Shown piece after piece: positions 13,086-49,820 of a stretch of DNA of 64,000 nucleotides (the first letter of the stretch is position 1; every line of letters begins with the position of its first letter). A program made the translations under genes and the position numbers. This stretch comes from Podarcis pityusensis (Eukaryota). The stretch is from assembly GCA_964106645.2 (NCBI GenBank), contig OZ067039.1. One strand, given 5' to 3'. The notes beneath the pieces were generated by a model. The model searched no databases. It saw nothing but the letters and a program-made list of their open reading frames with translations, and was not told the origin of the DNA.

Positions 13086-13474
13086 AAGGTAAAGGTAAAG
13101 GACCCCTGGCAGTTAAGTCCAGTCGCAGACAACTCTGGGGTTGCGACGCTCATCTCGCTTTACAGGCCAAGGGAGCTGGAGTTTGTCCGCAGACAGTTTT
13201 TCCGGGTCATGTGGCCAGCATGACTATGCCGCTTCTGGCGCAACGCAACACCAAAACCACAACAGCACACAGAAATGCTGTTTACCTTCCCGCCAGAGCA
13301 GTACCTATTTATCTACTTGCACTTTTTGGCGTGCTTTCAAAGAGCTAGGTTGGCAGGAGCAGGGACCGAGCAACAGGAGCTCACCCATCGCAGGGATTCA
13401 AACCACCAACCTTCTGATTGGCAAGCCCAAGAGGCTCAGTGGTTTAGACCACAGTGCTACCCACGTCCCTCCTT
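13086..13474 (-). mobile_element. Sauria SINE (Squam1)
   Basis: (ACCTTT)n tail on the minus strand and a tRNA-like head. TSD ACTTACTCCTTA at 13074-13085 and 13475-13486. Confidence 0.92.
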
Positions 13475-14165: not shown

Positions 14166-14526
14166 AAGGGTAAAGGTAAAGGGACCCCTGTTAAATCCAG
14201 TGGCGAATGACTCTGGGGTTGCAGTGCTCATATCGCTTTACAGGCCGAGGGAGTTGGCGTTTGCCCGCAGACAGCTTCCGGGTCATGTGGCCAGCATGAC
14301 TAAGCCATTTCTGGTGAACCAGAGCAGTGCACGGAAACACTGCTTACCTTCCTGCCAGAGCGGTACCTATTTATCTACTTGCACTTGACATGCTTTCAAA
14401 CTGCTAGGTTGGCAAAAGCAGGGACTGAGCAACGAGAGCTCACCCTGTCATGTGGATTTGAACCACCGACCTTCTGATCGGCAAGCCCTAGGCTCAGTGG
14501 TTTAGACCACAGCACCACCTGCATCC
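14166..14526 (-). mobile_element. Sauria SINE (Squam1)
   Basis: Homologous to 13086-13474. TSD AATAAATAACAGTA at 14152-14165 and 14527-14540. Confidence 0.92.
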
Positions 14527-36145: not shown

Positions 36146-37342
36146 CTTGTTCCAGCAAGTACTGCTCTCTAGCCCATTCACACAAATCCAAGAAACAACT
36201 GTATATTTGGGCAATAGTTTATGTCCATTGATAACGTTCCTTAATCTTGGCGAATCAATCAGGCTGTGTAGTTAATTTGGGTCTGCATACCACCCTCTGC
36301 CTTTCTGAAAGAGCAACATGTTAGGCTGCTAACCTAAATATTAAGTAATGATTAGACGTGTGAAAGCCAGTCAGAAAGTTTGTCATACATCTCATAGAAC
36401 ACTTAAGGAAATCAAGTGCAGTGTAGCTTGTATATACTAAGGGGAAATAAGGCTGGTGGATGGAAGATCATCAAAAGACACTAAGCAAGATCAAGACTTA
36501 ACTTTACTTAAATTTATTTCCCATGCATATTACAGGGACAAAATGCCAGCTGTCACAAAGGGATTCCCACTTGCTTTTTTTAGACAGGCTCAGCACATCT
36601 TTGCAGCCTCTAGTCACACAGGAGGCATGACAATTCTCTCCATTGGCACTTCAAAATGAAGACACTCAAAGTCTCAGAGCTGTGTTTCCCATGTTTTCCT
36701 GCTTTATATCTCATACCTAGTCCATCCATTTAGTCTGGACCAATATAGAAAACGGAAGCAGATTTCGTATCCTGCTAGGCTGCTAACCCAGTGGTTGCAG
36801 ATAGACACACCATTACTCAAAGAACGGACTGGGGGAGCCAAACATGGCAGCAGGAAAATATAGAGCCAAGGCGGGGGGGGGGGGGCACATGCCAGGCTAC
36901 ACAACTTAGGATTTCACTTTTCCTTCTTTTTCCTTCATAAGAAATCTGACTGCCTCTCCCCTCAGAGGACTCAGGATCAAATTGAATGTGGTATCATTGG
37001 CTCAATTAGCAACTGTGTAATTGGCTTTTTAAAAGTAAATTACAGGTGCCAGGGCCCCAGTCTGGATCAGGCAGCTGGAATGGGAGGGGGTCTTAACTGT
37101 TTGCTGCTCCTGTGTTTCCAATCTGGATCCTATTTGCATGACAAAGGGGGGTTCTATTTGCTGCAAAGGTTTTTTTTGTTTTGTTGTTTGTTTGTTTTAA
37201 AATGCAAGGTAGAGGGCAGTTCTGACAACAGAGAGCAAACTTTCTTATTTTTAAAAATCCACTGTCTTACGTTCACATAAACACCTGGGTCTCAGTCTGG
37301 ATTGGTAGGTGGGGGCAGTGGTAGAGGTTTTCAGCTTCCTTT

Positions 37343-37384
<42 letters not shown>

Positions 37385-37540
37385 TTTATTTATATCCCGC
37401 CCTCCCCAGCCGAAGCCGGGCTCAGGGCGGCTAACAACACTAAAATAGTGCAACATTATAAAAACATCAAAAAATTAATTAAAATCAAAATTGATGGCAA
37501 CCATAAACTAAAGTATTGTAAAGATTGCCAAAGGAGGGAG

Positions 37541-40525
37541 TCAGGCTGCGCCCTGACCAAAGGCCTGGTGGAACAGCTCTGTCTTGCAGGCCCTGCGGAA
37601 AGATGTCAAGTCCTGGAGGGCCCTTGTCTCTTGTGACAGAGCGTTCCACCAGGTTGGAGCCGCAGCCGAAAAAGCCCTGGCTCTAGTTGAGGCCAGCCTA
37701 ACCTCTCTGAGGCCTGGGACCTTCAAGATGTTTTTATTTGAAGACCGTAAGTTCCTCTGTGGGGCATACCAGGAGAGGCGGTCCCGTAGATACGAGGGTC
37801 CTAGGCCGTATAGGGCTTTGAAGGTTAAAACCAGCACCTTAAACCTGATCCTGTACTCCACCGGGAGCCAGTGCAGCTGGTATAGCACCGGATGAATGTG
37901 ATCCCGCAGCGAAGACCCCGTAAGGAGTCTCGCTGCGGCATTCTGCACCCGCTGGAGTTTCTGGGTCAGTCTCAGGGGCAGCCCCACGTAGAGCGAGTTA
38001 CAATAATCCAGTCTGGAGGTGACCGTCGCGTGGATCACAGTGGCTAGGTCAGGGCGAGAGAGGTAAGGAGCCAACTGCTTAGCTTGGCGGAGATGAAAAA
38101 ATGCCGCCTTTGTTATAGCTGCAATCTGCGCCTCCATGGAGAGGGAGGTATCGAAGATTACACCCAAACTCTTAACGGACGGTGCTGGCACTAATTGCAC
38201 CCCCGCAAGAGATGGGAGTTGCCCCCTCAATCCCATATCGTCCCGTCCCAGCCAGAGGACCTCTGTCTTCGAAGGATTTAACTTCAACCGGCTCCCACGT
38301 AACCATCCAGCCACAGCCTCCAAGCATCTGATCAGTGTGTCTGGGGCCGAGTCAGGATGGCCATCCATCAGCAGATAGAGTTGGGTGTCATCAGCATACT
38401 GATGGCAGCCCAGCCCAAAACTCCGGACAAGCTGGGCAAGGGGGCGCATAAAGATGTTAAAAAGCATCGGGGAGAGTATCGCACCCTGGGGCACTCCACA
38501 CACCAAGGAGTGGCGGGATGACAGTTCCCCCCCAAGCGCCACCCTCTGTCCCCGACCAGAGAGAAACGAGCGCAGCCATTGAAGGACTGTGCCCTGGATC
38601 CCCACGTCGGCAAGGCGGTGGTCCAGGAGTTCGTGATCGACCATGTCGAAGGCTGCTGACAGGTCTAGAAGAATCAGCAGCCCCGACCCGCCTCGATCCA
38701 GCTGCCTGCGGAGATCATCTGTTAGGGCGACCAGAGCCGTCTCGGTCCCATGACCAGCGCGGAAGCCGGACTGGAATGGATCCAGAGCCGATGTTTCATC
38801 CAGAAACCTACCAAGCTGTTCAGCAACCGCTCTCTCAATCACCTTACCCAGGAATGGAAGATTCGAAACTGGGCGGTAATTGGATAGATCTAAGGGATCT
38901 AATGATGTTTTCTTTAAGAGCGGACGCACCACTGCCTCCTTCAGTTCCCCTGGGAATGTCCCGGTGCCAAGGGACAGATTGATGATACCCCCCAGGGGGG
39001 CCCGCACCTCGTCTGGACACGCTCTAATCAGCCAAGACGGGCACGGGTCGAGAGGACAAGTGGTGGGCTTTCCAGCTCGGAGGAGTCTGTCCACATCGGC
39101 TGGGGATATCCGGTCAAAGTGGTCCAATACTGGACCCGAGGACAGTCGAGGGGCCTCCAGTTCCTTTATTGTATCCAAATTGGCAGGGAGGTCATGGCGG
39201 AGCGACAGGACCTTCTCCGCAAAAAAGCTCGCAAATGCCTCACAGCTGTGTGTCAAATTATTATTTAAATTTGGCTGTCCTTCGAGGGACGTTAAAGACC
39301 GAATTACACTAAATAATTGTGCCGGGCGAGAGCTAGCGGATGCAATGGAGGCCGAGAAGTAGGACTTCTTAGCGGCCTTCACTGCCATCTCGTAGGTTTT
39401 CATAAAAACTCTATAAGATGTTCTTGAGGCTCCGTCACGGGCACCCCGCCATACTCGCTCTAGCCGTCTGAGGTCCCGCTTCATTTTCCGGAGCTCCTCA
39501 GTAAACCAGGGAGCCCGGTTTCTGCGGGGTCGCAGAGGGCACTTAGGTGCGATCTCATTGATGGCTGCCAGGAGCTGGGTATTCCAGCCCTCAACAAGCT
39601 CAGTCAATGAGTCGCCAGGGGGAGAAAGGTCCCGCAAGGCTTGACGGAACCTATCAGGGTCCATCAGCCTCCGCGGGCGAGCCCAAATCGGCTCGCCACC
39701 TAAGCAGGGTGGGGGTGGAACATCAATCCTGGCTTTCAGAGCATAGTGATCAGACCATGGCACCTTGATCGAAGGAAACATGATCACATCTATACCGACA
39801 CCAAAGATCAAATCCAGCGTGTGGCCTGCTTGATGTGTGGGGCCCGAAACAAACTGGAAGAGCCCTAGTGTCGCCATGGAAGACACCAGGTCCAGAGCCT
39901 GTGAGGAGGGAGTGGCATCGGCATGGATGTTGAAGTCCCCCAATACCAATAGGTTAGGGAACTCCAAGGCCCAGCCGGCCACCGCCTCCAGCAGGCCTGA
40001 CAGGGTGGCTGCTGGTGCGCTAGGTGGCCGGTACACCAGCCAGACAGCCAAGCTCACCTCGGAGCCCCACACTAGGCCAACACATTCAATGCCGGGGATC
40101 AATGGCGGTGGTAGAGCCCTGAAAGAACAATCTTCCCGGATTAATAATGCCACCCCTCCCCCCCGGCCCACAGTCCGTGACTGGTGGAGGACGGAAAAAC
40201 CCGGGGGCGCCATCTCTCGTAAGGTAACAGTATCCCCTTCGCGCACCCAGGTCTCCGTCACACAAGCCAGGTCGACCCCCTGCGAGATGATGAAATCTCG
40301 CATGGTGGCGGTTTTGTTGCCTATAGACCTGGCATTGCACAACACCAGTGACGGAGGTGAGTAATCCTTGCTCACCCTACCCTCGTCTCTCGGGATGGGG
40401 CGCAGATTGGAAGGGGTACGAGCATATCCGTATCTCGATCCCCTTCGCCTATGACATCTGCCCCCACCGCCATACCTCCCTCGCCCCTCCACAGTAGGAA
40501 TCCCAAGCCTCATACTCGCCTCCAT
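37541..40525 (-). CDS. L2 APE-endonuclease / reverse transcriptase protein (994 aa, intact)
   Basis: Endonuclease motifs LCNARSI, CVTETW, VYRPP, GDFNIH, GHTLDLIF and SDH. RT motifs NYRPVSNLPFLGK, QSGFRAGHGTETAL, LDLSAAFD, GVPQGAILSP and YADDTQLY. Confidence 0.96.
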   Translation of the reverse strand: MEASMRLGIPTVEGRGRYGGGGRCHRRRGSRYGYARTPSNLRPIPRDEGRVSKDYSPPSLVLCNARSIGNKTATMRDFIISQGVDLACVTETWVREGDTVTLREMAPPGFSVLHQSRTVGRGGGVALLIREDCSFRALPPPLIPGIECVGLVWGSEVSLAVWLVYRPPSAPAATLSGLLEAVAGWALEFPNLLVLGDFNIHADATPSSQALDLVSSMATLGLFQFVSGPTHQAGHTLDLIFGVGIDVIMFPSIKVPWSDHYALKARIDVPPPPCLGGEPIWARPRRLMDPDRFRQALRDLSPPGDSLTELVEGWNTQLLAAINEIAPKCPLRPRRNRAPWFTEELRKMKRDLRRLERVWRGARDGASRTSYRVFMKTYEMAVKAAKKSYFSASIASASSRPAQLFSVIRSLTSLEGQPNLNNNLTHSCEAFASFFAEKVLSLRHDLPANLDTIKELEAPRLSSGPVLDHFDRISPADVDRLLRAGKPTTCPLDPCPSWLIRACPDEVRAPLGGIINLSLGTGTFPGELKEAVVRPLLKKTSLDPLDLSNYRPVSNLPFLGKVIERAVAEQLGRFLDETSALDPFQSGFRAGHGTETALVALTDDLRRQLDRGGSGLLILLDLSAAFDMVDHELLDHRLADVGIQGTVLQWLRSFLSGRGQRVALGGELSSRHSLVCGVPQGAILSPMLFNIFMRPLAQLVRSFGLGCHQYADDTQLYLLMDGHPDSAPDTLIRCLEAVAGWLRGSRLKLNPSKTEVLWLGRDDMGLRGQLPSLAGVQLVPAPSVKSLGVIFDTSLSMEAQIAAITKAAFFHLRQAKQLAPYLSRPDLATVIHATVTSRLDYCNSLYVGLPLRLTQKLQRVQNAAARLLTGSSLRDHIHPVLYQLHWLPVEYRIRFKVLVLTFKALYGLGPSYLRDRLSWYAPQRNLRSSNKNILKVPGLREVRLASTRARAFSAAAPTWWNALSQETRALQDLTSFRRACKTELFHQAFGQGAA

Positions 40526-40783
40526 TTACAAAATACAAAAGCAAACAAACAAACAAACAAAAAACAATTACACCAAAACAAAACCAATCCCCACCCCACT
40601 CAACAACCATCCCACCCCAACCCAAAATAAAAGAAAACAAAATAAAAATACATGGATAAAAACCACCGTTTATGGTGGTACAACAAAGTAAAAAGTAAAA
40701 ACACTTTTAAAACACTTTAAAATATATAAAACGTTTAAACATTTGCTGCTGCAGCACCAGTGTCCTTAAAGTTGTGGCGGTGG

Positions 40784-42185
40784 TGAGTATGGGGCCCGCC
40801 CCCAGGCCCAAGGTGGAGAATGGGCTTGCAGGGGGAGCGGTCCTCCCCAAGACTCACCGGCAAAGCGGCAGCAGCAATGTCCCGAGGCCTCCTTGGAGCC
40901 TTATATGCTGAGGTGGAGTATGGGGCCCGCCCCCAGGCCCAAGGTGGAGAATGGGCTTGCAGGGGGAGCGGTCCTCCCCAAGACTCACCGGCAAAGCGGC
41001 AGCAGCAATGTCCCGAGGCCTCCTTGGAGCCTTATATGCTGAGGTGGAGTATGGGGCCCGCCCCCAGGCCCAAGGTGGAGAATGGGCTTGCAGGGCGAGT
41101 GGTCCTCCCCAAGACTCACCGGCAAAGCGGCAGCAGCAATGTCCCGAGGCCTCCTTGGAGCCTTATATGCTGAGGTGGAGTATGGGGCCTGCCCCCAGGC
41201 CCAAGATGGAGAATGGGCTTGCAGGGGGAGCGGTCCTCCCCAAGACTCACCGGCAAAGCGGCAGCAGCAATGTCCCGAGGCCTCCTTGGAGCTTTATATG
41301 CTGAGGTGGAGTATGGGGCCCGCCCCCAGGCCCAAGGTGGAGAATGGGCTTGCAGGGCGAGTGGTCCTCCCCAAGACTCACCGGCAAAGCGGCAGCAGCA
41401 GTGTCCCAAGGCCTCCTTGGAGCCTTATATGCTGAGGTGGAGTATGGGGCCCGCCCCCAGGCCCAAGATGGAGAATGGGCTTGCAGGGGGAGCGGTCCTC
41501 CCCAAGACTCACCGGCAAAGCGGCAGCAGCAATGTCCCGAGGCCTCCTTGGAGCCTTATATGCTGAGGTGGAGTATGGGGCCCGCCCCCAGGCCCAAGAT
41601 GGAGAATGGGCTTGCAGGGGGAGCGGTCCTCCCCAAGACTCACCGGCAAAGCGGCAGCAGCAATGTCCCAAGGCCTCCTTGGAGCCTTATATGCTGAGGT
41701 GGAGTATGGGGCCCGCCCCCAGGCCCAAGATGGAGAATGGGCTTGCAGGGGGAGCGGTCCTCCCCAAGACTCACCGGCAAAGCGGCAGCAGCAATGTCCC
41801 GAGGCCTCCTTGGAGCCTTATATGCTGAGGTGGAGTATGGGGCCCGCCCCCAGGCCCAAGGTGGAGAATGGGCTTGCAGGGCGAGTGGTCCTCCCCAAGA
41901 CTCACCGGCAAAGCGGCAGCAGCAATGTCCCGAGGCCTCCTTGGAGCCTTATATGCTGAGGTGGAGTATGGGGCCTGCCCCCAGGCCCAAGATGGAGAAT
42001 GGGCTTGCAGGGGGAGCGGTCCTCCCCAAGACTCACCGGCAAAGCGGCAGCAGCAATGTCCCGAGGCCTCCTTGGAGCTTTATATGCTGAGGTGGAGTAT
42101 GGGGCCCGCCCCCAGGCCCAAGGTGGAGAATGGGCTTGCAGGGCGAGTGGTCCTCCCCAAGACTCACCGGCAAAGCGGCAGCAGC
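40784..42185 (-). repeat. Tandem array of about 10.7 x 131-bp GC-rich monomers (L2 5' UTR)
   Basis: ATGGGCTTGCAG recurs at 40820, 40951, 41082 and so on to 42130, an exact 131-bp period. Units differ at only a few positions. Confidence 0.98.
40875..40934 (-). promoter_or_regulatory. Putative Pol II core promoter in each monomer (GC box, TATA box, start site); one representative unit shown
   Basis: Minus strand reads GGGGGCGGG-20 nt-TATAAGG...GACATTGCTGCTGCC. The first T of TATA (40905) is 30 nt upstream of 40875, which is the monomer position where the element terminates (42185 = 40875 + 10 x 131). Confidence 0.65.
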
Positions 42186-44799
42186 CATTCATGCAGTTGC
42201 TAATTGTGCGAATGGCATAACATCTAGTTTGGCCTACAGATTCACAAAAGAATAGTGGAAGTATGCCTTTGGGACATAGCAATAGCATAGGAAGCTGTCC
42301 TAGATCTATCTCAACATTGTCTTACACTGGCAGGACTCCTGGAAGAGTCACTCTTTTGCAGCCCCACTTGAAGATGCTAGGGATTGGACCTGAGACCTTT
42401 TGCATGCAAAGAGGTGCTCTACCAAGCAAGCAACAGTCTTTCCCCAAATGGGCAATGTTGCACTGATGAAGATACTAGAATACTAATGTACTTTTGGAAG
42501 GTTGTGGAATGACTTTCTGATTAGCTGTGTGACATATTGAATCAAAAGCTGGTGATCAGCTGCTTGGACTGGAGGAACAGGAGAAGAGGATGATACAGAA
42601 CAAGAGCCAAAGAAGGAAATGCCATCAGACTGCATTCAGAAGCAAAATGCTAAGTCAGTGTTAGGGCTATTGAGCAGTGCTGAGAACAGATGCAAAATGC
42701 AATCATCTTCTCCTTGAAAACAACAGGGAATATGAATCCCAGTTCTGTGCAAAGAATGCGATAAGCCTTTGCCACATGATCGCCTTTTTCCTTTGGGAGG
42801 TAGCACATTTTACATAACTCCTACAATTTTTTTTACTTCTAATGCAAGTCGTTATTTACATAGGCTGATCCTGTGATTAGCATTTCATCTCTTCCCATGT
42901 TTACAAACTTTTAGCATCCATACAGATAAAATACTAGGTTGTTGGTTTTTAAAAAAACCCACTCCTAACAAACCTGATTCTGACTTCATAACTGAAATAC
43001 TTTGCATTTGCCTTTGTTTGAATGAGATTTTGCTTAGTGTGTCGATTATCAAGCCATTGTCAACTTTAATCCTCCATAGAATCCTCTGTACAATTTTCTC
43101 TGCTTTGTGTCATCTAAAAATCCTAAGAATATAAAGTGAAGAAATGCAAGCAGTTGAAAAATGCTGGACCAATAGTGCTACAGAATGCTACTTGTTTCTA
43201 GGACACCGTCACAAATTGCAAGCTGTACAATGTCCCCAAATTTTAGCCAGTTATCACTTCCCATTTTCCTTCTGGACATGAAAGGCCACCTGGAACAATA
43301 AACTGTATTGTGGGGGGCAGGCGTAAATAGGTTGGCACAAACCATATGTTGTTGTTTGGGGAATTGTTTTGTCAATCACACTTCATGTGATGCCACAGAA
43401 AGACACACACACAAAAAAAATTTCTGGGGTCCAAAATCACCCCCAGCATACACTGGAAATATCACTAGGGTACTACAGACATCCCAAAAACCATTAATGT
43501 AATTTTAAATATTGAGAATGGTTTCGGATTAACCGGATTTACCCAATCGGACACTCTCCAGATGTTATTGGACTACAGCTCCCATTAGCCCTAACTAGCC
43601 CTAGCCCTGATGGTCAGGGATGGTGGGAGTTGTAGTCAAACAACATTTGGGAGAAACTAGGTTGAGCAAAGGTTAGCAACAATTAGCTTTTTATAGGAAA
43701 GGAGTAATGAACAAGAGGGAATAAGAGGTTATACAATGATGCCAGGTGGGCTGGAGGGAGGAAAGAAGGTGCTGCCTTCTGCTTCATATTTTCCATTTAT
43801 TGTTGTACCCATGAGAGCAGTTTGCATTATTACTGAATTTGCTAAAGCACTTTGTGACCTTTTGAGATGAAAGGTGTAATTTAACTGAAAGCGAAATTCT
43901 ATTTATCAGTGCTTTACTATCGTAATGAATGTACAGATTCGGGCTTTGTGCTTAAAAGGGGCTCTCTGCTAGACAAGCAACATTTCTGGAGAACAACACC
44001 TAGCATAATATAGATTGCTTTGTTGAGAGAATGACTGTGGACTAGCATTGTTCAGTGGGGACTATAGTTGAGAATCACTAATGTCTTTCTTCCAGCAAAG
44101 AGCTATTATTTGGGAATGTTTTTCACATTATGGCTATGACATAGCATAACAGGCATTTGAATGTGTTCGCTCCTTCAGAAGGGTCATATCTGGGGTTCAT
44201 GGCTCTGAATATCAGTTTCAGGGAATCACAAGTGGGAAGAGTGCTGCTTCACTCAGATACCATGGGCATCTGGTTGGTACTGTGGGACCAGGATGCGGGA
44301 CTGTGATGGCCCTTTGGCCTGATCCAGCAAGGCTCTTCCAATGTTCCTATATAAGAATTTACTGCACCTTCCTTCCTTCCTTCCAATGCAGAGAGCATTT
44401 CCATTCCTGATTATATGGACTCACATGCATATTATATATTATGCACTTGGTTGTATCCTGTATTTGCGTTTTCCAGATCCTGCTTTCAAATGGATGAAAA
44501 ATTAACCAAGTTGACAAATATGATCCAGGGTGAAACAGGGATGAGTTGTTCATATTCTGTGATTCTGACAAAGAGTTCAAGGACCCCATATTTTTTCAAA
44601 ACTCCAGAATTTTCTAGTCCTGATTGTGGCAAGGATGGTGCGGGTATCTTTTCACATGTGTAATGCATTACTTTAAAAGTTTGTGGACGGCCTAAGACTT
44701 CCATTAATATTAGTGTGTAACAGCACCTAATAGCTCCTGTAAAATAGTTGTAACTTGTCCCGGAGAAAGGCCGGTAAAATTTTTAACGATTAGAATAGT

Positions 44800-46967: not shown

Positions 46968-47460
46968 ACTGCTTCTCCCTCTCAATAAATTCAATTTTGC
47001 AGAGGAAATAGATGTAAGTAGCAAATTATGAACCTCCACTTTTAAATTGCTTTGTTTTCCACTGTGAAGGACAGGATATTTTAACTCACCTACTTAGTTT
47101 TCTTTCAGGGCATATGAAATGAAACATAAACAAGATAATATATAACGGGGTAAAAAGCAAAAGGCATTCCTTGCTTTGGTTTATCAGTAATTTGGGTTAG
47201 GAATAACGGAACTAAATCCTGAAATCCATAGGCATCAGTGTACATTTTTGTGCATCCGGCAACCCGTTTTTCTTTTTCTTTAAAAATAAAACCTTCCCAA
47301 ATGTACATGTACAATAAATTGTTCAAGTATATACAGAGATTCAGACTGTTGGATGGGTATCAGTATCTCCAAGTTTGACATGTGAGAAGGCAGGAATAGA
47401 CACAGGAATGAAAGGATGGACTCCACACCTTCTCAGATTATGTACTGCTTTACCTGAGTA

Positions 47461-47702
47461 CAGTGGTACCTCAGGTTACATACGCTTCAGGTTACATACA
47501 CTTCAGGTTACAGACTCCGCTAACCCAGAAATAGTGCTTCAGTTTAAGAACTTTGCTTCAGGATGAGAACAGAAATTGTGCTCTGGCGGCGCGGCAGCAG
47601 CAGGAGGCCCCATTAGCTAAAGTGGTGCTTCAGGTTAAGAACAGTTTCAGGTTAAGAACGGACCGCCAGAACGAATTAAGTACTTAACCCGAGATAGCAC
47701 TG
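47461..47702. mobile_element. Tc1/mariner (Tigger-like) MITE
   Basis: TA-CAGTGGTACCTCAGGTTA ... TAACCCGAGATAGCACTG-TA, with internal TTCAGGTTA repeats. Confidence 0.9.
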
Positions 47703-48791
47703 TACAACAGAGCATAGGCTTAGGTTGTTTTTTGTAGATTGTGTCTACACTCAGACTTCGCATGCTGAGATGGGGGACTACCTAATGTTGATATTGTATT
47801 GGCAAACATGAGTTTCCAAACCTGGCTTTGCTGAGGTACCATAGAGAGTCTAGACGTTTGTAGAATGAGAATCAGTGGGCAGGTGGGTGGTTATTTTTCT
47901 AGTCCTCAGACTTATCTTCAACCTCAGGACCCAGTTGGTGATAAATTCCTTAAAAACAGTCAGGACAGAATATGCAGGGGAGACACTGCCTCCCCTTGCC
48001 AATTCTCCTCTGTAAAAGCCACCCCCAGATTAATATTATAAGGCAAACATGGAGTTGGAAACCCTGCATTTGTATTGCAATATACAGTCCCTCCCCCAAT
48101 GAGGTAGAAAGGAGTAAACAATGAGAAGGTGCCTGGAGAAGGCAGAATGACAGAGGTGAGAATGGCATCCTCTTTATTAAAACCCACAAAATATATGCAA
48201 GTAACAGTGTTCATTGTAGGAACATCATGAAGACATTACTGGGCAGTGCATTATTCTGTATAGGAAGAATATCTAGAAGGGATTAACAGGATGTTCTGAG
48301 TATCAGTAGAATTTCCCTGATGCACTGCCGAGGTTGATGATGTGAGCATTGCTACAGTGCTTGCAAGGTCCTATAACTGTATTTCACCATTTACTGAGAC
48401 TCATCATCTGAAACTGTTATAGAAGCAGGTGTGAAACACTGCTAATTGGATGGGTCACTTCAGTAGGGTTGCTTTGCAAGAGCATATTAATCTTCTGCTG
48501 CACTGGTTAGTGAGCCTGACAACGGAAACCAAATAGGCCATTAATTATTGTATCTGTTTCCATTAATAGCAACAAGGATTATCGTTTATACCAATTGTTG
48601 GTATCTCAAAGTAGTTTATAAGCATTTACTAACAAATCTTCACCTCCTCCCCTGGAGAGGGGTAAGGTGCCACTAAGCTTACTTTGCAAGCTTGGAAGAA
48701 CAAAGAGAAAAAAGAGACCTGTTGCAAGCTCAGCTCTGATCTGAAGTTCTTTGCCCATATTATGCAAAAGTAAAGATGGCTTGACACAGTA

Positions 48792-49033
48792 CAGTGGTAC
48801 CTCGGGTTACATACACTTCAGGTTACATACGCTTCAGGTTACAGACTCTGCTAACCCAAAAATATTACCTTGGGTTAAGAACTTTGTTTCAGGATGAGAA
48901 CAGAAATCGTGCTCTGGCGGCACGGCAGCAGCAGGAGGCCCCATTAGCTAAAGTGGTGCTTCAGGTTAAGAACAGTTTCAGGTTAAGAATGGACCTCCGG
49001 AATGAATTAAGTACTTAACCCAAGGTACCACTG
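48792..49033. mobile_element. Tc1/mariner (Tigger-like) MITE, second copy
   Basis: TA-CAGTGGTACCTCGGGTTA ... TAACCCAAGGTACCACTG-TA. Same family and orientation as 47461-47702. Confidence 0.9.
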
Positions 49034-49820
49034 TAATAGGTTAATATGTATTGGTAGTTAATACGTAGTAAAACATCTTATTTTGATTTCACACACTTTC
49101 CTGCAGATTTCAATTACCATTCTCACATTACTCATCAATACAGGGAAATACTCTTCTTGTATGTAATCTGTCTATATTATTGGACAACAGGGTCCTTTGC
49201 AGCTGTTCACTGAATTCTTTGAATCAACTATATCTATTCTGACATGCTGGCGCGGTTACTGACGGCAGGTCCTGCTTTGATCCAGATCTGAACTACTGTC
49301 TGCTTGAAGGTCCTGGAGGCAAAGAGCAGTTTTTGGCTCTTCCAGGAATCTCTAGTAAGTAGCACAGTCTTTCCTTTAGACCCAAACTCAGGGGTAATGA
49401 GAGCATTTAAAGGAAAGCAGGGAGGCACAGGTTTGACATACCTTGCACAGGACTCTGCCTGAATATTAACAGAGGGCAGAGCTCTGATGTTGCCTCAGCA
49501 CCAGTCAAATTGAGGCTGAGCCCTGTATCAATCAATAGATTTTATTGCATTAGCCGTGTGGCCATAGCATGATATACATTGAAATAACAACATGAAATGG
49601 GGGTGGGGAGGTAAAGGTAGATATCTTCCTGGGCGAATACTTAAAGAAAGAGGGGGGGAAAGGGGGGGTTACTAAAGCGACAGGGGATTTAAAACATTGA
49701 GCGACAGATAATACAGAAACAAACAAACAAAAAAAAAACTGCTGAAGCTGGAGGAGGACCGTTAAAGGGTCCTTCAGCTCCTCAGATTTATCCTAACTCC
49801 ATTGTCCTTGTACAATAAGA

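Follow-up and report, generated by a model that had tools for sequence, protein, structure and literature searches.

In the literature that we searched, which did not cover the primary description of the Anolis long interspersed elements (LINEs) by Novick et al. (2009), monomeric LINE promoters were described for rodent L1 only, and none was described for L2. For the monomers of mouse L1, the site of 5′ truncation has been read as the start site of transcription, and their duplication has been proposed to keep promoters in place in the face of retrotransposition that is prone to truncation; how monomers are regained was stated to be unclear (PMC6454616). The L1 elements of horse, elephant, opossum, and hyrax have motifs of 70 to 100 bp within their 5′ untranslated region (UTR) that are duplicated two or three times, compared with many copies in mouse, and among the Anolis L1 5′ UTRs of that vertebrate survey, none was found to be tandemly duplicated (PMC5381506). 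Here, we describe an L2-type LINE in a 64,000-nucleotide (nt) stretch of the lizard Podarcis pityusensis (GenBank assembly GCA_964106645.2, contig OZ067039.1), hereafter called the window, whose coding region is preceded by an array of 131-bp units. The element lies on the minus strand at 37344 to 42186 (4.84 kb) and is the single such element in the window, with no further fragment. We consider it probable that the 5′ UTR of this element is built of tandem promoter monomers and that the copy represents the full-length cDNA of a transcript whose start lay at a boundary between units.

The element resembles mouse and rat L1 (the A, Tf, and Gf types, with units of ~200 bp in mouse) in having GC-rich tandem units at its extreme 5′ end with a nonrepeated tether leading to the open reading frame (ORF), and in a unit number that varies by copy; in mouse and rat L1, the 5′-most unit also ends at a recurrent position (PMC6454616; PMC5381506), and here two of four copies end at a homologous one. 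It differs from them in being L2-type, having one ORF only and ending in a microsatellite where L1 has ORF1 and poly(A), and its unit bears no sequence relation to the L1 monomers. The mouse monomers carry YY1 or AP-1 sites and are described as TATA-less, whereas the lizard units have an upstream GC box and a TATA-like box, whose role in a promoter is predicted from the sequence. The 5′ UTR duplications of the other mammalian L1 differ from the lizard array in their few copies. What differs here is the clade, the unit, and the TATA-like box. The logic of a promoter stack is already known from mouse L1, and the "consumable stack" that the original prediction had put forward has its equivalent in print (PMC6454616).

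The monomer array spans 40785 to 42185 on the minus strand, where Tandem Repeats Finder reported a period of 131, 10.7 copies, and 97% matches without indels. It comprises 10 complete units and an innermost unit of 91 nt, each with 0 to 3 differences from the consensus, and neither the monomer nor a second array was found elsewhere in the window. An Sp1-type GC box, GGGGGCGGG, occupies unit coordinates 73 to 81, and after 20 nt it is followed by a TATA-like box at 102 to 108. In the outermost unit, the GC box is at 42105 to 42113, from where it repeats each 131 nt to 40795 to 40803, giving 11 boxes in the array, two of them with GGGGGCAGG. The TATA-like box of the outermost unit (TATAAAG, 42078 to 42084) is the first of ten copies, the last being at 40899 to 40905, with TATAAGG in eight units and TATAAAG in two. 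Unit position 1 lies 30 nt past the first T of the preceding TATA-like box and carries the motif GCTGCTGCC. The motif GCTGCTGCCGC is present in 11 copies in the array, and the putative start points, all on the minus strand at unit position 1, are 42185, 42054, 41923, 41792, 41661, 41530, 41399, 41268, 41137, 41006, and 40875. Counted from such a point, the layout is promoter-like, with the GC box at −59 to −51, the TATA-like box at −30, and a T-to-G pyrimidine/purine step at −1/+1. The first T of the box falls inside the span of about 31 to 26 nt ahead of the start that is usual for TATA-box core promoters of RNA polymerase II. When the unit was shuffled in 200,000 trials, a sense-strand TATAWR appeared anywhere in the unit in 1.6% of them and 28 to 33 nt before a fixed point in 0.07%. 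The layout as originally described, i.e., a GC box, 20 nt, a TATA box, and an outermost unit cut 30 nt past the TATA box, was accurate in each detail that could be checked.

The reading of the units as promoter monomers draws on this geometry, the pyrimidine/purine start, the GC box and start motif kept among related copies, the start of a second copy, and the variable, duplicating units. In the mechanism that we propose, the GC box and the TATA-like box of each unit would direct RNA polymerase II to initiate at the GCTGCTGCC heading the following unit, ~30 nt downstream, and several equivalent promoters would stand in tandem, as in the mouse and rat L1 arrays. Since the copy in the window begins exactly at GCTGCTGCC, it is best read as a complete cDNA of an RNA begun at a unit boundary of its parent. 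The outermost unit of such a copy would be deprived of its own upstream promoter. Where each promoter starts transcription in the following unit, the outermost one is left promoterless, so the unit number would fall from parent to progeny and duplication would have to restore it, with units regained through block duplication inside the array. Promoter activity, the start site, a decrease in unit number with each cycle, and the way in which the array re-expands are what we infer from the array. In the telomeric HeT-A and TART elements of Drosophila, each element is driven by a promoter that lies in the 3′ end of its upstream neighbor. The lizard array would be like them in that the promoter lies upstream, in the preceding repeat, so that the first unit of the array cannot transcribe itself. 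It is unlike them in that their unit is a whole element in a telomeric head-to-tail chain, whereas here it is a 131-bp unit inside one dispersed element.

At the 5′ end of the copy, the outermost unit opens at its position 1 (42185), which is the first templated base of the element. A single G (42186, minus strand) precedes this base, where the internal units have T. Either this G was added without a template, from the cap, or the flank ends with it. The extra G of the original description is present and mismatches the internal T, while its suggested origin from the cap is not separable from the flank. We compared this 5′ end with those of related loci that were retrieved through gene calls inside L2 copies (four from P. 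lilfordi and one from P. muralis), the comparison being of four full-length copies, namely, the one in the window, L004, L002, and L005. L004, a P. lilfordi copy with 94% DNA identity in the ORF, has 3.6 units of a TATA-less 115-bp monomer and begins with GCTTGCTGC straight after its flank; its internal units have ...GGACT ahead of the motif seen at its start. This start, GCT(T)GCTGC, falls within 0 to 2 nt of the position homologous to the 5′ end in the window. L002 (~93% DNA identity in the ORF) has inner units as in L004 and begins 48 nt before a unit start, and L005 (92 to 93%) has one window-type unit and the tether, with TTTAAG replacing TATAAG, and begins ~20 nt upstream of TTTAAG. A further copy, L003 (~93%), is 5′-truncated, begins inside the element without a 5′ UTR, and is uninformative. 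The 5′ ends therefore lie at a homologous unit position in two of the four copies (the one in the window and L004), and with regard to the proposed clustering of 5′ ends at one unit position, L004 agrees with the copy in the window whereas L002 and L005 do not.

The four copies have 10.7, 3.6, 2.4, and ~1.4 units. The order of units, tether, and ORF recurs in L004, L002, and L005, with the arrays directly upstream of the tether. An alignment showed the window-type (A) and the 115-bp (B) monomers to be homologous, having in common the start motif, GTGAGT, and the GC box, with the rest diverged. The GC box is kept in the B-type monomers of L004 and L002 and in the unit of L005, and both monomer types have T at −1 and G at +1. 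The A type has ~35 extra nt between the GC box and the start, and the TATA-like box sits in that segment. The monomeric 5′ UTR is hence a trait of one Podarcis L2 lineage, with at least two monomer types and a variable unit number.

Several observations weigh against the promoter-monomer reading. No target-site duplication and no empty-site sequence were found for the copy in the window, which makes its exact 5′ boundary and the extra G uncertain (a convincing target-site duplication was likewise not found in L002, L004, and L005). L002 and L005 start at other unit positions, few full-length copies being compared. The TATA-like box fits just 5 to 6 of the 8 positions of TATAWAWR, and its absence from the B-type monomers means that it may be dispensable. 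Lastly, RNA depth was 0 to 4 on the monomers and 0 to 3 on the tether in two raw-read runs (X23 and X24), which come from a related species (X8 label) and an unknown tissue and were not cap selected, and no places where RNA molecules begin were listed for these runs.

The deviating ends of L002 and L005 agree with another explanation, in which incomplete reverse transcription or 5′ truncation cut the copy short at random within a repetitive 5′ UTR, and the position of its 5′ end 30 nt past the TATA-like box is a coincidence without meaning. Most L2 copies are 5′-truncated, as the ~40-fold rise in DNA depth along the ORF toward its 3′ end in the DNA run X1 shows (the usual truncation profile), and the unit phase was picked after the end had been seen. 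However, an end within ±2 nt of a given position has a chance of ~4% per copy, and two independent copies with diverged monomers have such an end; in the window, moreover, this end is a pyrimidine/purine step 30 nt past a TATA-like box. We consider chance truncation improbable.

The B-type monomers bear more directly on what sets the start. The TATA-less relatives imply a start position that is independent of the TATA box, and the original claim of a TATA-dependent start conflicts with L004, which begins at the homologous position. The units may be promoters or enhancers in which the start motif and the GC box set initiation in a TATA-independent, Sp1-driven manner. On this account, the TATA-like box either was acquired late as a booster that the promoter can do without or is incidental, and the 30-nt rule is a by-product rather than the mechanism. 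The B-type monomers fit this account in that they lack the ~35-nt segment with the TATA-like box yet retain both GC box and start motif, and L004 begins at the homologous position; so do the weak match of the box to its consensus and the TTTAAG(G/A) found in place of TATAAG both in the older A-type unit of L005 and in the tether of the window's copy. The 30-nt spacing, on the other hand, is exactly canonical and was rare among the shuffled units, the improved TATA box is found in the young and most expanded array, and TATAAAG, which replaces the prevailing TATAAGG in the remaining two of the ten boxes, is nearer to the consensus. We give a TATA-independent start some weight while thinking it unlikely, and the same holds for a related possibility, which the TATA-less relatives with the homologous start suggest: initiation would have been set first by the start motif and GC box, and the TATA box would be a later reinforcement.

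The RNA reads are neither for nor against the predicted start sites. Their coverage at the 3′ end of the element tracks the DNA copy number, with both strands alike, and the table of loose read ends is filled by this far more abundant 3′ region, the monomer region not being among the listed ends. Over the 5′ two-thirds of the ORF (38309 to 40552), first mates on the plus strand were in moderate excess, with summed depths of 254 versus 107 in X23 and 166 versus 108 in X24 (ratios of 2.4:1 and 1.5:1), whereas the 3′ end was symmetric. If the libraries are reverse-stranded, this excess reflects sense transcription of long L2 copies in the related species.

The array has grown recently. Its 5′-most 455 nt (41731 to 42185, minus strand) are identical to 40945 to 41399, six units further in. 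In a self-comparison at an offset of 786, the exact run of 455 nt starts at the first templated base, and the 616-nt overlap contains 4 mismatches, compared with 19 to 34 mismatches at offsets of one to five units. This perfect duplication indicates recent growth via duplication of a multiunit block, in agreement with the array re-expansion that had been predicted. The duplication may have occurred in place, in a master element, or during reverse transcription, among which one copy cannot tell.

Growth as recent as this, possibly in situ, would also be expected if the array were a local minisatellite that expanded after insertion without any promoter role, or a satellite that merely abuts an L2, and one A-type array alone was examined directly. 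We estimated the abundance of the monomer from a comparison of sequencing reads with a 5,601-letter stretch as the query, in which X1, a run of the same species and perhaps even of the same sample, matched both flanks without mismatch and its contigs ended at the edges of the element. At a single-copy depth of ~23 in X1, the tether bin corresponded to ~120 copies, the bin of the innermost unit and tether to ~340, and the summed monomers to ~850 units, all of these being rough figures since contig word depth is a flat measure. These numbers suggest roughly 10^2 full-length 5′ UTRs and about 10^3 monomers, with few units per element. The ratio of ~850 monomers to ~120 to 340 tethers fits units that are linked to L2 rather than a large free satellite, as the linkage of monomer and L2 proposed at the outset would have it. 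DNA contigs under another species label (X8) contained monomers as well. The multicopy monomers in the DNA runs of two species, at the scale of L2 tethers and not of satellites, speak against a minisatellite or a neighboring satellite, as do the homologous monomers that head three other copies at other loci, each directly upstream of the tether, and the conserved GC box and start motif, which argue for constraint. We regard this explanation as highly improbable.

Each of the 11 units also contains the sequence CCG/GTGAGT, which in the outermost unit is at 42162 to 42170 (minus strand), 18 nt past the putative start, and repeats each 131 nt to 40852 to 40860. GTGAGT is kept in the B-type monomers, and in L005 just a TGAGT core remains. 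The sequence resembles a 5′ splice site, being consensus-like, or an AP-1 site. A sequence resembling a 3′ splice site, CTCCACCTCAG, ends right ahead of the TATA box in each unit, and splicing inside the array could in principle take units out of the RNA. A more elaborate version of the promoter-monomer reading would make the stack self-renewing: units with a TATA box would fire into the next unit, at least one unit would be lost per retrotransposition, and units would be regained when the reverse transcriptase, on arriving at the capped 5′ end of its template, jumps to another L2 RNA at the corresponding point, while GTGAGT could recruit the U1 small nuclear ribonucleoprotein and so favor sense elongation. 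Such a template switch would explain why the 455-nt block starts at the first templated base, in exact unit phase, beside the unmatched G. We offer this version as speculation and think it rather improbable as a whole. The array has 65% G+C and a CpG observed/expected ratio of 0.37, and among its seven variable positions, three show decay of CpG to TpG or CpA, as expected for a transposon promoter that is methylated in the germ line, which speaks for the promoter-monomer reading in its simpler form.

Downstream of the array, a nonrepeated tether of 259 nt (40526 to 40784, minus strand) leads to the ORF. Its first ~45 nt are a diverged remnant of a monomer, with TTTAAGG replacing TATAAGG, and beyond this remnant the tether is extremely T/G rich and contains three upstream AUGs. 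No AUG was found over 1,444 nt covering the whole monomer array and the first ~40 nt of the tether, a further point in favor of promoter monomers, and no canonical G-quadruplex pattern was found in the tether. The intact ORF of 994 amino acids (37541 to 40525, minus strand) matches Pfam Exo_endo_phos, an apurinic/apyrimidinic-type endonuclease (amino acids 70 to 260), and RVT_1, the reverse transcriptase (amino acids 541 to 790, with YADD at 710), and all of the catalytic motifs CNARS, TETW, GDFN, SDH, and YADD are kept. Because the gap between the array and the ATG is only 259 nt, there is no ORF1. The 3′ UTR of 158 nt (37383 to 37540, minus strand) has a terminal stem-loop at 37397 to 37430, 14 nt ahead of the tail, with a fold of −42.3 kcal/mol (z = −2.5 versus shuffles), and the element ends 3′ in an (ATT)13 microsatellite (37344 to 37382, minus strand). 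The Pfam domains, the motifs, and the array of 10.7 × 131 bp bear out the description of an intact single-ORF L2-type LINE with a monomeric 5′ UTR, and the element is apparently a recent, coding-competent insertion of an L2-type LINE of a lacertid lizard.

The last ~750 nt of the element (37374 to 38121) had a DNA depth of 0.4 to 1.0 million versus ~23 for single-copy sequence, i.e., ~17,000 to 45,000 copy equivalents. Both RNA and DNA reads diverge from the element at 37439 to 37557, which suggests that short interspersed elements (SINEs) or other retroposons have the same L2 3′ tail.

The label L2-type was assigned by indirect features and is provisional, and the top matches of the reverse transcriptase were unnamed reverse transcriptase proteins. 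The features pointing to L2 are the single ORF with endonuclease and reverse transcriptase, the 3′ end with a stem-loop and a microsatellite, the absence of CR1 octamers, and the many divergent relatives in Anolis. The 994-amino-acid ORF is 96% identical to Podarcis muralis proteins of 994 amino acids, 62% identical to one Anolis carolinensis cluster, 49 to 53% identical to further Anolis clusters (five divergent clusters in all, at 49 to 62%), and ~49% identical to Varanus proteins; the nearest proteins outside squamates were single-ORF proteins of ~985 amino acids in cyprinid fish, with 38% identity. Anolis has 17 families of L2 and 4 close families of CR1, so the many divergent Anolis relatives fit L2 better than CR1 (PMC5389967). 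The length of 4.84 kb falls inside the Anolis L2 range of 4.8 to 6.3 kb. At the 3′ end of the element, no CR1-type ATTCTRTG octamers were seen, and the tail is also not poly(A); the tails are (ATT)n for the copies from P. lilfordi and (AAAT)n for the relatives from Anolis.

Two LINEs of the L2 clade, ZfL2-2 of zebrafish and UnaL2 of eel, are experimentally active, and their reverse transcriptase recognizes a 3′ stem-loop and a short tandem-repeat tail. The lizard element is like ZfL2-2, which has been described as without ORF1p (PMC3880073), in its L2-type features and in having no ORF1. We found no report of a monomeric 5′ UTR for ZfL2-2 or UnaL2 in the literature searched. The 3′ UTR is unlike that of UnaL2 in having no match to the Rfam UnaL2 3′ element. 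An Rfam scan of 37000 to 42600 at an E value of ≤1 found no family, the UnaL2 element included, its sole match being a chance one to greA (E = 0.74), and the nonmatch to UnaL2 has no bearing on clade membership.

In a sister subfamily (L001 and L006), whose ORF has 82 to 84% identity at the DNA level, the 5′ region is unrelated and includes an upstream ORF of 252 amino acids, possibly an ORF1 (L001:8001-9170 and L006:1-770), and a TATTTAAGG box is present near the 5′ end of L006. These differences suggest that 5′ modules may have been swapped within one L2 lineage. Further afield, no tandem repeat was found in the 5 kb upstream of a Varanus L2 (L011) that matched amino acids 38 to 989 of the query, and the Anolis relatives (L008 to L010) are 5′-truncated and hold no information on the 5′ UTR. 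A protein search with a 117-amino-acid antisense ORF that runs through the monomers gave no matches, a search with the first 104 amino acids of the ORF gave just three short contigs from other subfamilies, and a 25-nt motif of the monomer had no exact match in a scan of JGI metagenome contigs.

Between the two flanks of the element, the only similarity is weak and SINE-like (28 nt at 82%). Directly upstream of the L2, at ~42360 to 42450 on the minus strand, is a SINE-like head derived from a tRNA (GGTAGAGCA...GGTCCAATCCC), and a weakly similar SINE-like fragment lies downstream at ~37100 to 37160. Two contig joints that skip ~5 kb were tried as empty alleles and rejected because their shorter side had 21 to 22 letters only; the SINE-like head and the downstream fragment are probably behind these spurious joints. 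Elsewhere in the window, a repeat of ~210 nt is present in two direct copies at 13112 to 13324 and 14190 to 14386 (83 to 86% identity, 1.07 kb apart), probably a pair of SINEs, and a 248-nt direct repeat is present at 47457 to 47704 and 48788 to 49035 (92% identity, 1.33 kb apart).

How a LINE retains its promoter through RNA-mediated copying is explained in textbooks by monomeric promoters, which are known in depth from rodent L1 only. If an independent origin in the L2 clade is true, this solution would be convergent. The lizard lineage would also offer a contrast that is absent in mouse, since it combines TATA-less and TATA-bearing monomers in one lineage of elements, and it makes two questions testable, namely, what fixes the start site and how monomers are regained. 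In lacertid genomes assembled from short reads, arrays of this kind are likely to be collapsed and to be taken for satellites in the annotation.

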